In this document: positions 19,786 through 63,619 of the stretch, piece by piece
Position numbering within the stretch: position 1 is the first letter of the stretch
Layout of the letters: each line of letters opens with the position of its first letter
Source of the DNA: Malacoraja senta
Taxonomy: Eukaryota
Assembly (NCBI GenBank): GCA_038087875.1
Contig: JAXLNO010001166.1
Span: forward strand, 558,001 to 622,000
Direction of reading: 5' to 3'
Length of the DNA: 64,000 nucleotides
Translations under genes and position numbers: made by a program
Notes under the pieces: generated by a model
Database searches by the model: none
Told to the model about the DNA's origin: nothing
The model's input: the letters and a program-made list of their open reading frames with translations, nothing else

Positions 19786-20058
19786 CCTGTGGAACATTGA
19801 CTCCCTGCAGCAGAGTTGCATGTTCGATGTAACAGGAGAATTTTGCCACATCTTCTCTATTCAGTTGAATTGTATTCTTCAGCTGGTAAGTCCCATCCCA
19901 ATTGGGCAACAGATCACTGGATTCAGACTCGTGGACCCCCTCACCATCTCTCAGCCACGTTACATCGATGGCCCGTGGCTAGAAGCCTGTGACAAGGCAG
20001 GAGAGTCTCAGTGATTGTGACCCATCACGTTTAATCCCAATAAACACCTCAGAGGTTT
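19786..20058 (-). pseudogene. MHC class I alpha3 (C1-set Ig) exon of gene A, with in-frame stop
   Basis: cttgcag| acceptor and |gtaagt donor, 273 nt, phase 1-1. TSEVFIGIKRDGSQSLRLSCLVTGF*PRAIDVTWLRDGEGVHESESSDLLPNWDGTYQLKNTIQLNREDVAKFSCYIEHATLLQGVNVPQ. TAG at 19979-19981 replaces the Tyr of GFYP. Confidence 0.88.
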
Positions 20059-20308: not shown

Positions 20309-20624
20309 TATCTTGCACAAAGTTTACAGCCTTTTCTCTCTTCATTTTGCATTTCTGGCAAAACAACAAAACATTTCGTTTTAATATCACTAACGCTCCT
20401 TATCATAGCTCCAGACTTTAACTGACAGCGCAGATGAAAGGGGAATGCAGGGCCCAATGGAGGAGTATAACTCACCATTGGGATTGATACTGTAGACATG
20501 ATTGCTTCTATTTGTTCATGAATCTCTGCTGAATAATAACACTAAATATTCCAAGAGGGAATGGGAGGAAGAAGTTCTTAAAATAGAGAACTGTTGGAAA
20601 TTGGATGTCACCATCCTAAGGAGT

Positions 20625-30698: not shown

Positions 30699-33076
30699 AT
30701 CTATATATCTCTCTCTCTCTCTCTCTCTCTCACTCACTCCACCTCTCCATCTCTCTCTCCCCACTCTCTCCCCTCTCTCTCCCCCCTTCTCTCCCTCCCT
30801 CTCTCTTTCATTCCCCTCCCCTCTCTCTCCCACTTCCCCTCTCTCACCCACTCTCTCTCCCACTCCCCTCCCAACTCCCCCTCTCTCTCCCCTCTCTCTC
30901 CCCATCTGCCTCCACCTCCCCCACCCCAGAGAGAGAGAGAGAGGTAGGAGAGGGGGAGGGGGAGCGAGAAATAGAGAGATAGAGAGCAGTGAGAAGGTGA
31001 GAGAGAGAGAGAGAGAGAGAGAGAAGAGAGAGGGAGAGAAAGAGAGAGGTGGAGAGAGATAGAATGGGGGGGGGAGAGAGGGTGGAAGGAAAGAGAGAGG
31101 GAGAGAAAGAGAGTGAGCGAGAGAATATGTGAGAGAGAAAGAGAGAGAGATGGAGAGACAGAGACAGGGTGAAGGAGGGAGAGAGAGAGAGACAGAGAGA
31201 GGGGGAGAGGGAGAGGGGAGTGAGTGATAGATGGAATAGAGTGATAGACAGATAGAGACAGAGATGGAGATAGTGTTAGTGTGCGGGGATCGCTGGTCGG
31301 CACGGGCTCGGTGGGCCGAAGGGCCTGTTTCCGACCTGTATCTCTGAAGCGGAGAGTTTGGGGCCTGGTTCAAGATGGCTGACTTCTGCCTCCTGTTTCC
31401 GACCTGTATCTCTGAAGGTGAGAGTTTGGGGCCTGGTTCAAGATGGCCAACTTCTGCCTCCTGTTTCCGACCTGTATCTCTGAAGGGGAGAGTTTGGGGC
31501 CTGGTTCAAGATGGCTGACGTCTGTTTCCGCTCTGTATCCAAACTAAACACAGTTTCCTTCCTTTGCCCCCTCCCCCCCAGCATGTGGATCATGTCTCCC
31601 CGCGAGTGTGAGAGTCGTCCTCACCACCTCCTCCCTGCTCACATTCTACCTGGACATTCTACCCTGTACTGTCTCCACTCTCCCCCTCTCGCCCCCCTCT
31701 CTCCCTCTCTCTCCCCCTCCCTATCTCCCACCTCCCTCTCTGCCCTCCCTCTCACCCCCTCTCTCCCCTCCCTCTCACCCCCTCTCTCTCCCTCCCTTTC
31801 CCCCCTCCCTCTCTCCCCCCTCCCTCTCTCCCCCTCTCTTTCCCTGTCTCTCTTCCCCTCTCTAACTCCCCCTCTCCCCACCCCCTCTTCTCCCTTGAAC
31901 CCCCCTCTGCCTCTCGCTACCGCCCCCCATTGCCGCCCCATCCCCATCTAACCCCCCCTCTCCCCACCCCCTCTTCTCCCACCTCTCCCCCTCTGTCCGC
32001 CCTCCCCATCACCTCCCTCTCCCCCTTTCTCTGTCACCCATCTCCCTCTCTCCCCTCCCTCTCTCATCCCTCCTTCTCTCCCCATCTCATCCTCCTCTCT
32101 CAACCCTCTCTCCCCTGCCTCCTCCCCTCTCTCTCCTCCCACTCTCTCCCCCCTCTCTGGCCCTTCTCTCTCTCCCTCTCTCTTTCTCTCCCTCTCTCTC
32201 CCCCTCCTCTCTCCCACCCTCCTCGCTCCCCCCTCAACCCCCTCCTCTCTCCCCCTCCACTTTCCCCCCTGCTCTCTTTCTCCTTCTCCCCCCACTCCCC
32301 CTCTCTCTCCCACCCCTTTCTCCTCCCCTCTACCACCTCCTCTCTCCCCCTCTTCTCCCCCTAATCTCTCCCCTCCTAATCTCCCCCTCCTCTCTCTCTT
32401 CTCCTCCTCTATCCCCCTCCCTCTCTCTACCCCCAGTCTCCCCCCTGCCTGTGTGTGTGTGGGGGGGGGGGGTGAGTCGCTGTCTCCATCTCTCTCTCTC
32501 TCTCCTGCCATCCATCTTTCGCCCAAATCCTCAATTTTCACTCAATTCTACATTTTCCCCTCAATGTCTCNNNNNNNNNNNNNNNNNNNNNNNNNNNNNN
32601 NNNNNNNNNNNNNNNNNNNNNNNNNNNNNNNNNNNNNNNNNNNNNNNNNNNNNNNNNNNNNNNNNNNNNNNNNNNNNNNNNNNNNNNNNNNNNNNNNNNN
32701 NNNNNNNNNNNNTCTCCTACCCTCCCCACCCCACCCCAACGCGGACAAGAGAGAGAGGGAGAGAGACAGAGAGAGAGAGTGAGGGGGAGAGAGAGAGGGA
32801 CAGGGCGAGAGAGCGGGGGANNNNNNNNNNNNNNNNNNNNNNNNNNNNNNNNNNNNNNNNNNNNNNNNNNNNNNNNNNNNNNNNNNNNNNNNNNNNNNNN
32901 NNNNNNNNNNNNNNNNNNNNNNNNNNNNNNNNNNNNNNNNNNNNNNNNNNNNNNNNNNNNNNNNNNNNNNNNNNNNNNNNNNNNNNNNNNNNNNNNNNNN
33001 NNNNNNNNNNNNNNNNNNNNNNNNNNNNNNNNNNNNNNNNNNNTTTTCTCTCTCGCTCTCTAACTCTCTCCCTCAC
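29240..33076. repeat. Very long low-complexity (CT)/(GA) tracts with N gaps
   Basis: Polypyrimidine 29240-30928, polypurine 30929-31265, polypyrimidine 31650-32430; gaps at 29931-30071, 32571-32712, 32821-33043 (and 33077-33237). Confidence 0.95.
31324..31545 (+). repeat. About 67-bp tandem repeat (x3) in a SINE tail
   Basis: cctgtttccgacctgtatctctgaag..gagagtttggggcctggttcaagatggc repeated. Confidence 0.85.
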
Positions 33077-33240
33077 NNNNNNNNNNNNNNNNNNNNNNNN
33101 NNNNNNNNNNNNNNNNNNNNNNNNNNNNNNNNNNNNNNNNNNNNNNNNNNNNNNNNNNNNNNNNNNNNNNNNNNNNNNNNNNNNNNNNNNNNNNNNNNNN
33201 NNNNNNNNNNNNNNNNNNNNNNNNNNNNNNNNNNNNNGAT

Positions 33241-33450
33241 CTAGCACCAGTCTCCAGAACAGGTCCTCTGACGTCACCTGTTGCTAAGGGGAGGTGGGGG
33301 ACCTCTGATTGGTCGCTGTGTACCCCCCATACAGCATCATCTGTTGTCGGGGAATGGAAGGGGGCTACTGATTGGCCGAAGGGGAAGCGGAAGATCCAAT
33401 CCGATTGGCTGCCGCACCCCATCGTGACGTCACCTGTTGCCAGGGCGGAG
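33241..33450 (-). promoter_or_regulatory. Candidate MHC-type SXY promoter (three X boxes, two CREs, four CCAAT boxes)
   Basis: Minus strand: CCCTGGCAACAGGTG-ACGTCA (33445-33425), CCCGACAACAGATG (33351-33338), CCCTTAGCAACAGGTG-ACGTCA (33290-33269). CCAAT/ATTGG near 33308, 33371, 33396, 33404. CpG-rich. Confidence 0.6.
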
Positions 33451-35184
33451 CGCGGCGCGGAGAGACTGCGGCCGCCCGCCCGCCTCTGGGATGGATGCGC
33501 TCAGGGCGGGGATTTATTCATGAGCAGAAGCACTGAGGTGAGCGGATATTTCACCGCGCTCTTTCACTGCTCCCTGAACTTGGACTGGGTCACCGCATAA
33601 ATAAATGTGTTGGTGCAGCAGCTGAGAATACTCAGCAAAAACCCGACGTAGTGAAAGATATATTGAGAATCATTCAGATCCTTTCCAATTCCTGTGATCT
33701 GATAATAGACGAAGTCTACAACCAGCGTCAGCCACAGGAGGATGAAGCTGCCGGAAATGGTGACGAGTAAAACCATAGACCTCCTCCTGCTCTCCATCTC
33801 CGGGTCACTGCGGTTCTCCCCCTTGCTCTCACCCCTCAGCTCCTTACGGACCCGACTGGCCACTAAAATGTGGCGGACTGTCAGAGCGTTGAGCAGCAGG
33901 ATTACAGCGAAAGGGAGGAACGGAGTTAAAACCGTGTCGATCCAGTCAAATGCCACCCACCCGGGGTCACTGTAATAACTGTCCACCGGGTCACAGCCCC
34001 ACGGGACATTGTCGATGATATATCTGGGTTCATTTGTGAAGTAGCGGGAAGGTTTTTCAGACAGAGCAGAACGCCGGCTGTTGCCAGAACCACGGCCGCA
34101 GTTTTCCCGCTGCAATATTTAGTTTTCAGCTTCTGGCAACAAATGGCGACAAAGCGATCAAAGGTGAAAGTGACGGTGAACCAGACAGAACAGTCTGTAG
34201 CTGCATACATCAGCACTTCGTTAACACTGCACACAGGGGTGATGGACAGGAAACTCCAATAAAAGTAATGAGATCGGATCTGAAACAAAATGACCCCGGT
34301 GATGAGGACCAGTAGATCGGCCGCTGCCATGGCCACCAGGTAGCGAGTGGTGCAGGTGGAGAGGCCGCACTTTCCCCGGGACAGGATCACAATCGCCACT
34401 AAATTCACTGCGGAAAGACAAGGGAACGGACACTGGGCATTTACTCAACACGGTCTCCGGGGCTGAACACCGGCTCGACTTTCAGCTCAAGATCAGGAGT
34501 GTTGGAGTCGGTGCGCGGGTGCTGCAAGTTTAACAATGTCAGAGCCGGCTCCGACTGTGCCCGACCTGCCTGCCTGCTTCAGGGGACAAGAGATAAGGTG
34601 ACGGGCGGGTGGGGTAAAGGGCGGGGAGGGAACGAGCAGCCATCCACCCGCTACAATAGGCGTAATGATCCTTTCTATAGTGAACCCTGCTGCTGCTCAC
34701 AGTCTGTGATGGGGCCGCTTTCACAGACTTAACCGTGAGCGGCCGGCCGCGTTTAACCAGGGCTCTGGGAACTCGGCATCTGATGGGGACGAGGAGGGAG
34801 ACTTCCAGAGGGAAGGCAGGGACAACATGGAATCCGGCAACAGAGTGGTTCCGTTAATGGATTCATTCCACAGTGAGGTCAGTAGACAACAGGTGCAGGA
34901 GGAGGCCATTTGGCCCTTCGAGCCAACATCGCCATTCAATGTGATCATGGCTGATCATCCCCAATCAGTACCACGTAAAGCATCCAGAGAACCGGCCTCC
35001 ACCGCCCTCTGAGTCAGAGAATTCCACACTCATCACTCTCAAGCTTCCACTGAGGTTATCCCAATGGCTTCTTGATGCAAACTACTTCATCTATTGCATT
35101 ATCCCCAAACTCTGCCCTTCCAGAACCAGGTTAGCATTCAGCACAGATAAGGCAAATTATTCAGAAAGGACTTTACACAAGAGT

Positions 35185-37816: not shown

Positions 37817-38393
37817 TGTTATGCGCTCCCCCCCCCTGGTGAAGGCTATGTACTTACCTTTCTCTGTTTCTTTCCCGAGTGCAGGCCTTGTGGCTGTGAG
37901 TCTGGAATCAAGGGGTTAAAAGGCTCCTGTACCCAATTGGCCAAGCTGCGACAGGTGACGGGTGACTCATCTGAAGCTTACATACCAGAGTCATCCCAGG
38001 ATTCTCTCTCTCCTTCGTCGACCCTGACTTGTGAGCTGACTGCTGGAGTGAGCTGCGGAAGGCCTGGCCACCTGGCATAGAACTTTGTGTACTTTCACCC
38101 TTACGAAATATTGAATTGGGACGGATAAGGGCTTATCTAGTGTTTTCGTGTATTTTGTTTCAGGGTTATATCTCTTTAGGCAGGTTTTAGGGTCTCCGGT
38201 TCGACGGTCCATCACGTGGCTGGCTGCAGCACTGTTAAATTGTTTGTCAGTCCATCCATATCCCTGACTGGGTTGTTTGAATCAGGTTTGGGTTTTGTGT
38301 TCAATTGAATAATTAAAACTACTTTTGAACTTGAACCTGGTTTTTGAATTATGTTACGCGGCTCTGAAGTACCTGTATTCGGGAGTCGTAACA
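37817..38393 (+). repeat. 5' LTR (577 bp)
   Basis: tgttatgcg...gagtcgtaaca; aligns to 43166-43737. Confidence 0.93.
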
Positions 38394-38396
38394 AAA

Positions 38397-38409
38397 TGGG
38401 GGCTCGTCC
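38397..38409 (+). other. Primer binding site complementary to the tRNA-Pro 3' end
   Basis: tgggggctcgtcc three nt after the 5' LTR. Confidence 0.8.
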
Positions 38410-38559
38410 TAAGTTTTGAGGACCCTAGACGTTTTTTTTTTTTTTTTAGTAGGCTTCTGGTGAGTAAGGAAGTCTGTGTTGTGAGGGAAAATTTTCTTCC
38501 CTGTTTGTGGTAGCATTGGTGGCCCAGGGTTTAGCTGGTGCTTTGGTGCTACATTTGAT

Positions 38560-40405
38560 ATGGAGTTTAAAGGGAAGGACTTTATTGAGGCTCCTAGTCG
38601 GGAGTTGTTTGATAGATGTACGAAGGAGCATTTGATTTTTCTGGCTGAGAACTATGAAGTGCCTATTAACCCACATTCAAGGAAACTGTCCATTAAATGG
38701 GTGTTGTGGGCTGCGTTGGTGGAGGGTGGGGTTTTGCCTGGCTGTGCAGAAAGTCCCACACCTGTTCAGCCTGATCAGGACATGGAGGCAGTCATTAGGT
38801 TAAAGGAGTTAGAGCTGGCAAAAGCAGAGGAGGAGACCAAAAGAGCAGAGATTCAGCTGCGTGGGGCTGAGGAGGAAACCAAGAGGGTAGTGATTAGGCT
38901 GCGGGAGAAGGAATTGGATGCCTCCCGGGTTTCTTCTAGGGAACGGGAGTTTGATGCGAGCAGAAATATTCGTTTGGTTCCACCGTTCAGTGAAAGAGAT
39001 GTTGATAAATATTTCACTTTGTTTGAGCGTGTGGCTATATCACTGAAGTGGCCTAGGGACGTGTGGACCTTGCTATTGCAGTGTGTCCTTGTGGGTAAAG
39101 CACGGGAGGTGTACTCGTCTTTGTCTGTTGAAAGCAGTCTGGACTATGAGTGTGTGAAGTCTACAGTATTAAGGGCTTATGAATTAGTTCCAGAGGCGTA
39201 CCGGCAGAAATTCCGGCGCTTTAGGAAGTTTGATAGTCAGACTTATGTGCAGTTTGCTAGGGAGAAGGAGGCACTTTTTGATAGGTGGTGCACTTCTCAA
39301 GGAGTGAAGGATATTGGGCAACTGCGGGCCTTGATGATTATGGAAGAATTTAAGAACTGTCTCCCTGAGAGGGTTACTACTTACCTTAATAAGCAGAAGG
39401 TGAATGAGGTGTCTAAGGCCGCGGTGTTGGCAGATGAGTATGTATTGACTCATAAAACTGATTTTGTTGGGCGCTCCAATAGTTTTGGTGCACGGCCGGT
39501 TGATCATGGTGGTGTCGCCGGTGGCAGTGTCAAAGGTATTTCTGTGCCTGCAAGTGGCAGCACGTTGATACAGGGGGAGGTCCGAGCTGATAAGGTTGAC
39601 GGAAATTTGAGGACTAACGAAGGTCATGTGTGCTACTATTGTAGAGGGAGAGGGCACATGTTAAAGGCGTGCCCCGTTCTGAAGCAGAAAAATGAAAAGC
39701 CTGTGGCTTTGGTGGGTACACAGAAGGCACCTGTGGTACCTGAGGTGCCTGAGTCTGATGAGTGTAGGAATTATTCTGCGTTCATCATGAATGGTTTTGT
39801 TTCTCTGGAGGATGGGGGTGATAGAGTTCCAGTATCCATCTTACGTGATACTGGCGCTACTCAGTCCTTTATATTGGATAGTGTACTGCCGTTTTCTGGG
39901 GAATCATCGGTTGGGTCAAGTGAGTCTCGAGTCCGAGTTGGTTTCAGGCCAGGTAACTGTTGGGTTACAGCCGTGTTTTCCCGTTGGGGGAGTTTCAGTA
40001 ATTTTGGGGAATGACTTGGCAGGAGGTAGTGTTATAGTTACTCCTGAGGTGATGGCTGTTCCGATGGTGCAGAGTCCGGATAGATTGGCTATGCAGCATC
40101 CAAGGGTCTTCGCAGCTTGTGCTGTCACGAGGGCTATGGCTAAGAGCCAGGCGAAGTTTGGGGATGTAGTGGACCCAAGTGAGAGCATTTTGCGGGATCA
40201 GGATGAGGGATCCTGTGTTGTGAAGGGTGTTTCTGCATCTCAAGATGGGATAGTGTCTGGAAATGGGCCGGTGTCACTGTCACGTGACCGGCTGGTTGAG
40301 GAGCAAAAGAGTGATCCAGGTTTATCTGATCTGTTCGACTGCGCGGTGCCTGAGGGGGATATGGATCCACAGCAAAGGGGTATTTTCTATGGGAGGGCTT
40401 ACTGA
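38560..40405 (+). pseudogene. Gag (SCAN-like domain, CCHC knuckle) and protease, frameshifted
   Basis: EAYRQKFR...LMIMEEFKNCLP...AAVLADEY; CYYCRGRGHMLKAC; LRDTGATQS. Frameshifts near 39920 and 40380. Confidence 0.85.
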
Positions 40406-40422
40406 TGCAAAAGTAGTCTCCC

Positions 40423-43095
40423 TTGGATATATCTGGGCATGATGATTGGAGCGTGGTTGATCAGATTGTGATACCTCGTCGGTATAGGGACGAGATACTC
40501 TGTTTGGCTCATGATGGTCCTCTGGGTGGACATTTGGGGGTCAATAAGACGTATGACCGTATCTTACGGAATTTTTTTTGGCCAGGGTTGAAAAAGGACG
40601 TGAAACAGCAGTGCAGGTGTTGTCACATTTGCCAGGTGGCAGGAAAGCCGAACCAATCGATTGTTCCTGCGCCTTTATATCCAATCCCTGTGGTCGGTGA
40701 GCCGTTTGAGCGAATTTTACTTGATTGTGTGGGTCCTCTACCTCGGACAAAAGTGGGCAACAAGTTTTTATTGACAATTATGTGTGCGGCTACCCGCTTT
40801 CCGGAGGTGGTCCCTGTGCGTAGAATTACTGCCCCTATCATTGTGAAGTCTCTCACTAAGATTTTTTCGTTGTTCGGTTCGCCCAAGGTGGTGCAGAGTG
40901 ACCAAGGTTCCAACTTCATGTCGAAGGTTTTTGGTCAGGTAATGAAGTTGCTTGATATTAAGCATTGTTACTCCAGTGCGTATTACCCTGAGAGCCAGGG
41001 AGCTCTCGAGAGGTTTCACCAGACTTTGAAATCGATGTTGAGGTCTTACTGCCTGGAGTTTGAAAAAGACTGGGATGAGGGGGTTCATCTAGTTATGTTT
41101 GCGGTGCGTGCGGTCGTGCAGGAGTCTTTAGGGTTCAGTCCTGCTGACCTGGTGTTCGCGCATACTGTACGTGGTCCGTTGACGGTCCTAAAGGAGAAAT
41201 GGTTGCAGGAGGATACCAAACGAAGTATTTTAGACCACGTCTGTACCTTTCAGTCTAGACTGAAGAGGGCATGCGAACTGGCAATGGGTAATCTTGCTTC
41301 TGCTCAGTCTAGGATGAAGGGGTGCTTCGACAGGAAGGCTTCAAGTAGGAATTTTTCTCCAGGTGACAAGGTCCTGGTGTTGTTGCCCATTCCTGGTTCC
41401 AATCTACAGGCTCGGGATAGCGGTCCCTATCCGGTGGTTAAGAAGGTTGGTGAAAGGGATTATGTTATTGGTACCCCTGATCGAAGGCGAAAGACTCAGC
41501 TCTGTCATGTCAACATGATGAAGCAGTACCATGAGCAGGAGCCTGTGGAGGTTGATGGGGAGGTGCTGTGTCCTTCGGTTTTGGCTGCAGTGGTGCTGCC
41601 CCCTGACACGGGTGCTGATGTGGGTGAGGCACGGTTGTCGGAGGCAGTGACGCAGGGATGGCTGTGTAACTCTGAGGCTTTGGAGTCGCTTCCCTTGCGG
41701 TTGTCTCATTTGACTGAGCATCAGCGGGGTGATCTGCTGGCTTTGGTGGAGTCAAATGGGTCACTGTTCTCGGATGTGCCTTCTCAGACATCTGTGCTGC
41801 AGCATGACATTGACGTGGCCGGTGCTGCGCCAATTAAACAGCATCCGTATCGGGTCAACCCTGACAAGCGTCATCGTCTATGGAGTCAGGTTGACTATAT
41901 GCTGCGGCATGGCATTGCTGAACCTAGTTGTAGTCCGTGGAGTTCTCCGTGTCTACTGGCTACGAAGGCTAATGGGGAGGACAGGTTTTGCACGGACGTT
42001 CGGAAAGTGAATGGTGTAACTAAGCCGGATTGCTATCCTCTCCCACGAATGGAGGATTGTGTGGATCGTGTGGGAAGTGCATCTTTTGTGACTAAGTTGG
42101 ACTTGTTCAAAGGGTATTGGCAAGTTCCTTTGACTAGGTGGGCGAGGGAGATCTCAGTGTTCGTTACGCCTGATAACTTTCTGCAGTACACAGTAATGGC
42201 ATTTGGGATGCGCAATGCGCCGGCAACCTTCCAACGGTTGGTGAACATTGTATTGTCTGGTTTGTCGTTCTGTGAGGCATACCTTGATGATTTGGTTGTG
42301 TGCTCCATGTCGTGGATCGAACACATCGGTCATCTGAAGGAGGTATTTCATCGTCTAGCGGAGGCAAAGCTCAATATCAATCTGGGGAAGTGTGAGTTTG
42401 GCCAGGCCACGTTAACGTATCTGGGTAAGGTGGTGGGCCGGGGTCAGGTTCGCACTCTCAAGGAAAAGGTGGAGCATATTGTCGCATTTCCTGCTCCAAC
42501 CTCGAGGACTGAACTCCGTAGGTATCTGGCTATGGTTGGGTACTATAGAGGATTCTGTCCAAACTTCTCTGCGGTAGCTGCCCCTTTGACGGATTTGCTG
42601 AGTCCGAAGGTAGCTTTTGTGTGGTCCGCAGAGTGTCAACAAGCCTTTGATCATACTAAAAGTCTTCTGGTGCGCGCACCAGTGCTTGCGGCGCCTGATT
42701 TTGATCGTACATTTAAGCTGGCAGTGGATGCTAGTGATCGTGGGGTTGGGGGAGTTCTTCTACAGGATGATTCAGATGGGGAGGAGCATCCAATTTTGTA
42801 CTTCTCAAAGAAGTTTAATCGTCATCAGAAGTGGTACTCCACCATTGAGAAAGAAGCCCTTGCTATTTTAATGTCTCTGAATCATTTCGAGATATATGTT
42901 GGCTCCTGGAATGTCCCTGTCATCATACTCACGGATCATAATCCGTTGGTATTTTTGAAAAGTATGAAGAATAAGAACCGGCGGTTAATGAGCTGGAGTT
43001 TGCAGCTGCAAGACTACAACCTAGAGGTCAGGCATATCCGTGGCAAGGATAATGTCTTGGCTGATGCCTTGTCGCGCCAGTGGAGTTTCAGCTGA
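40423..43095 (+). CDS. Pol: integrase, RT, RNase H (open 890-aa segment after a TAG at 40414-40416)
   Basis: AH..GGHLG...C..C zinc finger, LDCVGP, QSDQGSNF, GALERFHQTLK; then RT (DLFKGYWQ, YLDD) and RNase H (DASD, EKEAL, TDHNPL, ADALSR). Confidence 0.9.
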   Translation: MDISGHDDWSVVDQIVIPRRYRDEILCLAHDGPLGGHLGVNKTYDRILRNFFWPGLKKDVKQQCRCCHICQVAGKPNQSIVPAPLYPIPVVGEPFERILLDCVGPLPRTKVGNKFLLTIMCAATRFPEVVPVRRITAPIIVKSLTKIFSLFGSPKVVQSDQGSNFMSKVFGQVMKLLDIKHCYSSAYYPESQGALERFHQTLKSMLRSYCLEFEKDWDEGVHLVMFAVRAVVQESLGFSPADLVFAHTVRGPLTVLKEKWLQEDTKRSILDHVCTFQSRLKRACELAMGNLASAQSRMKGCFDRKASSRNFSPGDKVLVLLPIPGSNLQARDSGPYPVVKKVGERDYVIGTPDRRRKTQLCHVNMMKQYHEQEPVEVDGEVLCPSVLAAVVLPPDTGADVGEARLSEAVTQGWLCNSEALESLPLRLSHLTEHQRGDLLALVESNGSLFSDVPSQTSVLQHDIDVAGAAPIKQHPYRVNPDKRHRLWSQVDYMLRHGIAEPSCSPWSSPCLLATKANGEDRFCTDVRKVNGVTKPDCYPLPRMEDCVDRVGSASFVTKLDLFKGYWQVPLTRWAREISVFVTPDNFLQYTVMAFGMRNAPATFQRLVNIVLSGLSFCEAYLDDLVVCSMSWIEHIGHLKEVFHRLAEAKLNINLGKCEFGQATLTYLGKVVGRGQVRTLKEKVEHIVAFPAPTSRTELRRYLAMVGYYRGFCPNFSAVAAPLTDLLSPKVAFVWSAECQQAFDHTKSLLVRAPVLAAPDFDRTFKLAVDASDRGVGGVLLQDDSDGEEHPILYFSKKFNRHQKWYSTIEKEALAILMSLNHFEIYVGSWNVPVIILTDHNPLVFLKSMKNKNRRLMSWSLQLQDYNLEVRHIRGKDNVLADALSRQWSFS

Positions 43096-43165
43096 ATATT
43101 TTCTGGGATTTGGTGGTGTTTATTCTCTCTTCTTCCGAAACGTATTCAGTATCTTTGGGTGGGGG

Positions 43166-43737
43166 TGTTAGGCGCTTCCTCCCCTGGTGAATGATATGTA
43201 CTTACCGTTCTCTGTTTCTTTCCTGAGTGCAGGCCTTGTGGCTGTGAGTCTGGAATCAAAGGGTTAAAAGGCTCCTGTACCCAATTGGCCAAGCTGCGAC
43301 AGGTGACGGGTGACTCATCTGAAGCTTACATACCAGAGTCATCCCAGGATTCTCTCTCCTTCGTCGACCCTGACTTGTGAGCTGACTGCTGGAGTGAGCT
43401 GCGGAAGGCCTGGCCACCTGGCATAGAACTTTGTGTACTTTCACCCTTACGAAATATTGAAATGGGACGGATAAGGGCTTATCTAGTGTTTTCGGGTATT
43501 TTGTTTCAGGGCTATATCTTTTTAGGCAGGTTTTAGAGTCTCCGGTTCGACGGTCCATCACGTGGCTGGCTGGAGCACCGTTAAATTGTTTGTTAGTCCA
43601 TCCATAACCCTGACTGGGTTGTTTGAATCAGGTTTGGGTTTTGTGTTATTGAATAATTAAAACTATTTTGGAACTTGAACCTGGTTTTTGAGTTATGTTA
43701 CGCGGCTCTGAAGTACCTGCATTCGTGAGTCGTAACA
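43166..43737 (+). repeat. 3' LTR (572 bp)
   Basis: tgttaggcg...gagtcgtaaca. Confidence 0.93.
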
Positions 43738-63190: not shown

Positions 63191-63443
63191 TTTATAATGA
63201 CTCATTGATATTTCTAGGATTTGGGGCAGTGAACCCATAATATATAACTTTTTTTACACTGAATTCACAATTTTTAAATATCTGATTATCAGAAACATTT
63301 AACAACAGCACAAAGGCTAGTTGACAGTGGTGACTGTCGAGGCATTTCAGGTGTAGCTGCTGCCTTATCCTACTTGAGATCGATCATTTCTTCAAGCCCA
63401 ATACCTTTACTAGCAACAGTTCATCACAATTTTTCCATCTTAC

Positions 63444-63551
63444 CTCTCCTCTTTTTTCTCCACCAAACAATTACTGCCAAGACAATAGCCAGCAATATCA
63501 GCACACACACGGCAATAAGGCCTATGTGCCTGTCTTTCTTTCTATTTCCTT
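63444..63551 (-). CDS. Transmembrane exon of a second type I membrane protein (gene B, probably class I-like)
   Basis: ttatttttcag| acceptor, G|gtaaga donor, 108 nt, phase 1-1. (E)GNRKKDRH-IGLIAVCVLILLAIVLAVIVWW-RKKRR. Confidence 0.75.
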
Positions 63552-63619
63552 CTGAAAAATAAGAATGCATAATTTTACAAATCAATTGCTAAGCTGTGCA
63601 GCTAAATAGATGGGCACTG

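Follow-up and report, generated by a model that had tools for sequence, protein, structure and literature searches.

The window, i.e. the whole 64,000-nucleotide stretch of Malacoraja senta DNA analysed here, contains a motif module of 213 bp on the minus strand (33450-33238). A receptor pseudogene lies at its high-coordinate side, masked bases and simple repeats lie at its low-coordinate side, and two exons of an MHC class I copy are found farther along the same strand. The surrounding features are as follows:

33500-34410, minus strand: large exon of a GPR139-like pseudogene (Pfam 7tm_1)
33077-33237, no strand assigned: masked stretch (N) of 161 bases, where a start site or leader exon would be expected by analogy with the little skate class I locus L005
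29216-33076, no strand assigned: CT/GA low-complexity tract of ~4 kb, downstream of the module on the minus strand, with three further masks inside
19787-20050, minus strand: class I alpha3 exon with one in-frame stop and 87.5% protein identity to L. erinacea P0003
7715-7951, minus strand: class I TM/cytoplasmic exon, belonging to the same truncated copy as alpha3

Neighbouring pseudogenes and repeats

GPR139-like genes form a family that is hugely expanded in sharks and rays. The copy in the window has two lesions relative to its paralogues: one nucleotide is deleted near 34045, and a stop codon at 33566-33564 ends the reading frame early, its relatives extending ~20 codons beyond the position of this stop. 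Reads and contigs of related skates carry intact versions of the gene, and a possible remnant of its exon 1 is found at ~34615-34715. Three paralogous loci (L002, L003 and L004) match the gene at 86-93% down to 33446-33495, right at the module's edge, and then diverge, one of them running into a LINE where the homology ends. The paralogues share the gene end without the module, and thus the module is not part of the receptor unit. Its origin as a GPR139-like duplication unit or 3′ UTR was rejected on the basis of these three loci. A plus-strand first exon at 33482-33547 is also unlikely, as this sequence is the opposite strand of the coding tail that the GPR139-like paralogues have in common. 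Farther out, a plus-strand LTR retrotransposon of the Gypsy type spans 37900-43600 and has long open reading frames for gag and pol; its LTR pieces at 37991-38215 and 43256-43561 match each other, and strand-specific RNA reads begin in the 5′ LTR.

The alpha3 and TM exons are 84-88% identical to the little skate class I-like protein P0003. They lie 13-25 kb past the module and are of a class I lineage other than the UGA-like one described below. The P0003 locus (L001) holds alpha1, alpha2, alpha3 and TM, and DNA homology to this locus ends at 20575, ~515-525 bp upstream of alpha3. The 64 kb yielded no leader, alpha1 or alpha2 exon when eight class I proteins served as tblastn queries, and a profile HMM of 80 elasmobranch class I proteins, applied to all six-frame open reading frames of the 64 kb, gave no class I 5′ exons. 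The end of homology, the in-frame stop codon and the absence of 5′ exons together indicate that alpha3/TM is a 5′-truncated pseudogene.

The preliminary description of this DNA had the module pointing at the class I exons, as an antigen-presentation promoter on the strand of alpha3. The minus strand is indeed shared, but the exons are those of a truncated pseudogene 13 kb off. A role as ordinary promoter of the alpha3 gene was rejected, since the copy bears a nonsense codon and is without its 5′ exons, and since the X1-X2 box is absent from the promoter of the distant shark Heptranchias (L006), the sole promoter of the alpha3 lineage fetched, although a CCAAT is present there. In L001 the 10 kb ahead of alpha1 hold no module-like sequence. 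The end of an alpha3, a connecting peptide and TM also make up a short class I-like piece at 63427-63588 (minus strand), with the remainder of a gene absent from its vicinity (profile E=3e-5; tblastn E=4e-8 to a sawshark protein). It may be another class I fragment or a processed copy.

At the low-coordinate side of the module, the region of the start site is unreadable because 33077-33237 is masked. Three of the four masked runs in the window are in the CT/GA tract and this fourth one adjoins it. The tract is CT-rich, with a GA-rich part at 32745-32820, and displays spurious 600-aa open reading frames on both strands. Beyond it are a LINE, a DNA transposon and a tyrosine-recombinase element. 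On neither strand does the sequence downstream of the module show a coding exon other than those of transposons, and no MHC gene start is visible less than 200 bp past it, the sequence here consisting of the 161 masked bases and simple repeat, with transposons following.

Composition and spacing of the module

The control of mammalian MHC genes by an enhanceosome of RFX, CREB and NF-Y together with NLR co-activators is well worked out. SXY modules sit less than 200 bp ahead of the point where an MHC or antigen-presentation gene starts; they are bound by the RFX5 complex, CREB/ATF1 and NF-Y, and depend on CIITA or NLRC5. The canonical Y box is ATTGG (an inverted CCAAT) on the strand that reads X1 and then X2. 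A pyrimidine tract 5′ of X1 is a trait of the mammalian S-Y enhancers (PMC2278383), in which spacing is 16 bp from S to X and 20-22 bp from X to Y (PMC4374748), and the factors that bind these enhancers have been named (PMC7281430). The whale shark has orthologues of both CIITA and NLRC5 (PMC8455134).

The module in the window consists of two full X1-X2 composites, one X1-only box and three NF-Y-type boxes. Its elements, in the order in which the minus strand reads them, are:

33425-33450, minus strand: unit A, a pyrimidine-rich tract leading to an X1 half-site GCAAC fused to a perfect CRE; the 16-mer GCAACAGGTGACGTCA is at 33440-33425
33401-33408, minus strand: NF-Y-type box CCAATCGG, beginning 16 nt past the unit A CRE
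33381-33394, plus strand: GGAA-repeat element GGAAGCGGAAG, between NF-Y boxes
33368-33375, minus strand: NF-Y-type box CCAATCAG, 33 bp from the CCAATCGG box
33332-33354, minus strand: unit B, a pyrimidine tract and X1-like ACAACAGATG at 33347-33338, with ATGCTG where a CRE is expected
33305-33312, minus strand: second NF-Y-type box CCAATCAG, 19 nt past unit B and 23 nt ahead of the unit C X1
33269-33300, minus strand: unit C, a pyrimidine tract and a second exact copy of GCAACAGGTGACGTCA at 33284-33269
33247-33252, minus strand: degenerate Y-like box GACTGG, exactly 16 nt past the unit C CRE and 9 nt from the start of the masked bases

An X1 half-site with a 5′ pyrimidine tract, as in SXY modules, is present in all three units. 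The half-site is GCAAC in units A and C and ACAAC in unit B, and pyrimidines make up 70-80% of the 20 nt 5′ of each X1. In units A and C the X2 sequence TGACGTCA starts 8 nt past the G of GCAAC and thus abuts X1; unit B has an X1-like box without a CRE, and therefore no abutting X2. The gap to the next box is 16 nt from the CRE in A and C, and 19 nt in B. No S (W) box was recognised in the module, and the sequence upstream of unit A is GPR139-derived.

The preliminary description spoke of a triplicated module, and this is correct for two complete X1-X2 units, but the third unit is X1-only and the copies are unequal. Two X-like boxes fused to perfect CREs had been noted, and they are the two exact copies of GCAACAGGTGACGTCA; the GACTGG box likewise lies at the offset expected for it. 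A CCAAT-type box was said to follow each X, and the gaps are regular. However, on the strand that reads X1 and then X2, the boxes after A and B read CCAAT, opposite to the canonical ATTGG, and only the box after C has the canonical orientation, in degenerate form.

A plus-strand CCAAT (33396-33400) overlaps the CCAATCGG box with opposite polarity. In reads of a related skate, 33398 A>G destroys this CCAAT and leaves CCAATCGG unaffected. The GGAA-repeat element at 33381-33394 we take to be a putative ETS/EICE-like element. In the related-skate reads, 33390 G>A turns it into GGAAGCGAAAG, which fits the ETS-IRF composite pattern GGAANNGAAA.

Measured between fixed motif points, the six sites of the module are spaced 30, 33, 30, 33 and 30 bp. 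Each step amounts to about three helical turns, which places all of the sites on the same side of the helix.

The motifs are real, and chance does not account for them. The exact 16-mer GCAACAGGTGACGTCA occurs twice in the 64 kb, both times on the minus strand and 156 bp apart, and dinucleotide shuffles give a chance expectation of 0.26 matches even when three mismatches are allowed. The 213 bp hold half of the palindromic CREs in the window (two of four) together with three of the eight CCAATC[AG]G boxes, and these three are co-oriented. Units A and C match at 16/16 positions of the core, whereas in the 40-nt flanks no more than 15/40 and 3/31 positions match. An identical core between unrelated flanks shows that this is not a young tandem repeat, and a recent tandem triplication is ruled out on these grounds. 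The cores of A and C, with one CpG each, look as though they are under constraint and do not stem from recent duplication. The CpG is intact in both CREs, and the observed/expected CpG ratio is ~0.9 at 33338-33637 vs 0.47 across the window. The module was also considered as a piece of a transposon or LTR. This was rejected, as neither the window nor 274 kb of related loci hold a further copy, and the repeats run in direct rather than inverted orientation.

Class I promoters of skates

No promoter analysis of cartilaginous-fish MHC genes was found in the searchable literature, and a search for a description of a shark SXY module or its X-box letters gave nothing usable. The reference loci are L005, the UGA-like class I gene of L. 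erinacea, whose tail ends in a YQNI motif, and L007, its orthologue in A. radiata (thorny skate). They provide a standard from one class I lineage only.

The two promoters (L005 9891-9945 and L007 2890-2946) have the order CCAAT, 9 nt, ACAACTGGTGACGACC, 16 nt (17 in A. radiata) and GATTGT, itself an imperfect Y box. X1-X2 is ~95 bp ahead of the ATG in both loci, and the Y-like GATTGT is ~57 nt ahead of the leader-exon ATG in little skate and thorny skate. This promoter block is kept in both species, and sequence farther upstream differs. A relaxed X1-X2 pattern has four matches in the 338 kb of window and loci, and these are unit A, unit C, L005 and L007.

The X1-X2 cores of the UGA-like promoters and the module agree at 12/16 positions. 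Unit C also has the order of the UGA-like promoter, i.e. CCAAT, X1, X2, 16-17 nt and a Y-like hexamer. It reads CCAATCAG, 23 nt, the 16-mer, 16 nt and GACTGG, and thus fits the pattern CCAAT/X1-X2/16-17 nt/GAYTGK, with GACTGG in the position and polarity of GATTGT in L005. The 16-nt gap is shared by units A and C, and module and UGA-like promoters are oriented alike with respect to the gene strand. The likeness is at the motif level only, and blastn gives no alignment. Other properties differ. The UGA-like promoter is a single unit followed by the ATG of the leader exon, whereas the module has extra units and no visible exon. A leader ATG of the L005 type, ~57 nt after the Y-like box, would fall in the masked 33077-33237. 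The comparison with chondrichthyan class I promoters that was called for in the preliminary description thus gives agreement in X1-X2 with L005 and L007, but not with L006.

Gene order at L005 is also of interest. A GPR139-like gene shares the strand of the class I leader and precedes it by 8 kb, and the order of GPR139-like gene and then class I gene resembles that of receptor pseudogene and then module in the window. NCBI models of little skate LOC129716032 (L005:10001-108607) fuse the class I gene to a downstream GPR139-like gene, with products of 576-663 aa and class I introns of 22 and 18 kb. These fused models imply read-through splicing between class Ib neighbour genes. Outside the module, the 338 kb contain a single further group of three co-oriented CCAATC[AG]G boxes, in an intron of the class I gene (L005:43754-43793, minus strand). 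This CCAAT array may be the promoter array of a transposon.

A probable stranded promoter module and its alternatives

We consider it somewhat more probable than the reverse (roughly 0.55) that the sequence is a real class I-type X1-X2/NF-Y module of two and a half units in helical register, stranded by duplication and insertion turnover in the class Ib region. With no gene start visible after it, the module is probably a stranded or relic promoter. It would have originated as the promoter of a class I copy whose gene body has been lost, or of one whose leader is hidden in the mask, and it would have been orphaned where it now sits, with a dead GPR139-like gene on one side and a simple-repeat/transposon tract on the other, in a class Ib region made up of duplicated pieces. 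RFX, CREB/ATF and NF-Y would assemble on the module into an enhanceosome, which in turn would dock a co-activator of the CIITA or NLRC5 type, and the module would fire toward lower coordinates on the minus strand. Perhaps it still binds its factors; factor binding, direction of firing and relic status are what we infer from motifs and position. The preliminary reading of the sequence as an MHC enhanceosome is consistent with the X1-X2 juxtaposition, the pyrimidine tract, the 16-nt gap and the orientation, all of which match L005 and L007. It is weakened in that no S box is recognised and Y is reversed in two units.

The RNA that bears on these points is stranded polyA RNA of a related skate (or of a paralogue), with reads 90-97% alike, taken from 6% of one run. 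Strandedness was verified on the Gypsy LTR at 37.9-38.4 kb. Read depth over the module is 3.3-3.7, mainly with the first mate on the plus strand, which indicates minus-strand RNA. Minus-strand coverage is unbroken from the GPR139-like exon (depth 1.3-2.8) and ends abruptly at the acceptor of that exon, and at this low depth, from 6% of one related-skate run, read starts do not pile up at the module. Unbroken coverage and no start pile look like read-through over the module rather than silent upstream DNA. Two other runs, X1 and X3, are uninformative on transcription because they cover genic and intergenic neighbours alike; neither has reads over 33238-33410.

Immediately outside the high end of the module, opposite-strand reads climb from 0.6 to 2.9, so that divergent transcription is a weak possibility there. 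This climb would fit a generic CpG-island-type promoter with NF-Y, CREB/ATF, an RFX family member and GC boxes, possibly bidirectional, that serves a non-MHC gene or lncRNA whose first exon is either masked or overlaps the GPR139-like gene on the plus strand. Such a promoter would also account for the CpG ratio of 0.9 and for a plus-strand ATG with a GTGAGC donor-like site at ~33520-33552. NF-Y promoters often carry multiple CCAAT boxes ~32-33 bp apart, e.g. those of cell-cycle genes, and the module resembles them in having three co-oriented NF-Y boxes 33 and 63 bp apart. However, these cell-cycle promoters do not have the X1-CRE composite, which, in combination with the 16-nt gap, is otherwise confined to class I promoters within the 338 kb, and the window has no cell-cycle gene. 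The plus-strand ‘exon’ is antisense to the GPR139-like tail, which is 86-93% alike in paralogues that have no module, and non-transposon coding exons are not seen downstream on either strand. A generic promoter thus appears rather unlikely.

The module could also be a distal MHC enhancer in current use, with no gene or transcript of its own, that boosts class Ib neighbours by looping. No adjacent exon is visible, core motifs and CpGs are kept while flanks have diverged, and class I fragments and genes are found around the locus. Intergenic CIITA-binding enhancers are known near human MHC-II genes (PMC2278383), and like these CIITA/RFX-bound elements the module has X/Y motifs away from any gene start. 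The human enhancers, however, were defined by occupancy and function, whereas the module is known here from sequence motifs. Since its geometry is that of a proximal promoter and the window has no intact class I gene, current use as a distal enhancer is less probable still than a generic promoter.

Although minus-strand polyA RNA runs unbroken and at similar depth from the GPR139-like exon through the module, which begins within ~50 nt of the end of GPR139-like homology, it is improbable that the sequence is non-functional GPR139-like 3′ untranslated or read-through sequence with a motif cluster produced by local duplication, as L002-L004 have no module after the same gene end, and a 16/16 core between unrelated flanks, co-oriented NF-Y boxes, three-turn spacing and the promoter match would be unexpected in neutral sequence.

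With the stranded class I-type module as the preferred reading, there is the further question of whether it is at work. It is doubtful, if conceivable, that the module is a working multimerised class Ib enhanceosome platform, with phase-locked RFX/CREB/NF-Y sites every three turns that recruit a CIITA/NLRC5-type co-activator. Cartilaginous fish are the oldest living lineage that has an MHC. If such a platform does operate, then together with the UGA-like promoter it would mean that the MHC enhanceosome design predates the split between cartilaginous and bony vertebrates, and that skates expand this design by multiplying units. The module had been called ancient in the preliminary description, an age that we infer and do not observe.

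The more useful product of the analysis is the promoter pattern that the module shares with real skate class I genes. It provides a concrete cis-element for cartilaginous fish, i.e. an X1-X2 composite, a fixed 16-17-nt gap and a Y-like box, which two skates carry at a real class I gene and which occurs multimerised in the window. The copy in the window illustrates how regulatory modules can be stranded in a duplicating, transposon-rich class Ib region.

The SXY kind of module is itself known; what is new is an SXY-like design in a cartilaginous fish, multimerised and without a gene. Its differences from the mammalian SXY modules are several. No MHC gene start is visible within 200 bp, and binding and dependence on a co-activator are predicted from motifs. 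No S box is recognised in the module, and the UGA-like skate promoters instead have a CCAAT 9 nt upstream of X1. The Y box is reversed in units A and B and degenerate in unit C. In addition, X2 is a perfect palindromic CRE, and there are two and a half units where SXY has one. The module nevertheless resembles the mammalian SXY modules of the HLA-DRA and H2-K type in its basic plan: an RFX-type X1 follows a pyrimidine tract, a CRE-type X2 abuts it, NF-Y boxes lie about two turns past X2, and the composite is strictly spaced (PMC2278383, PMC4374748, PMC7281430).
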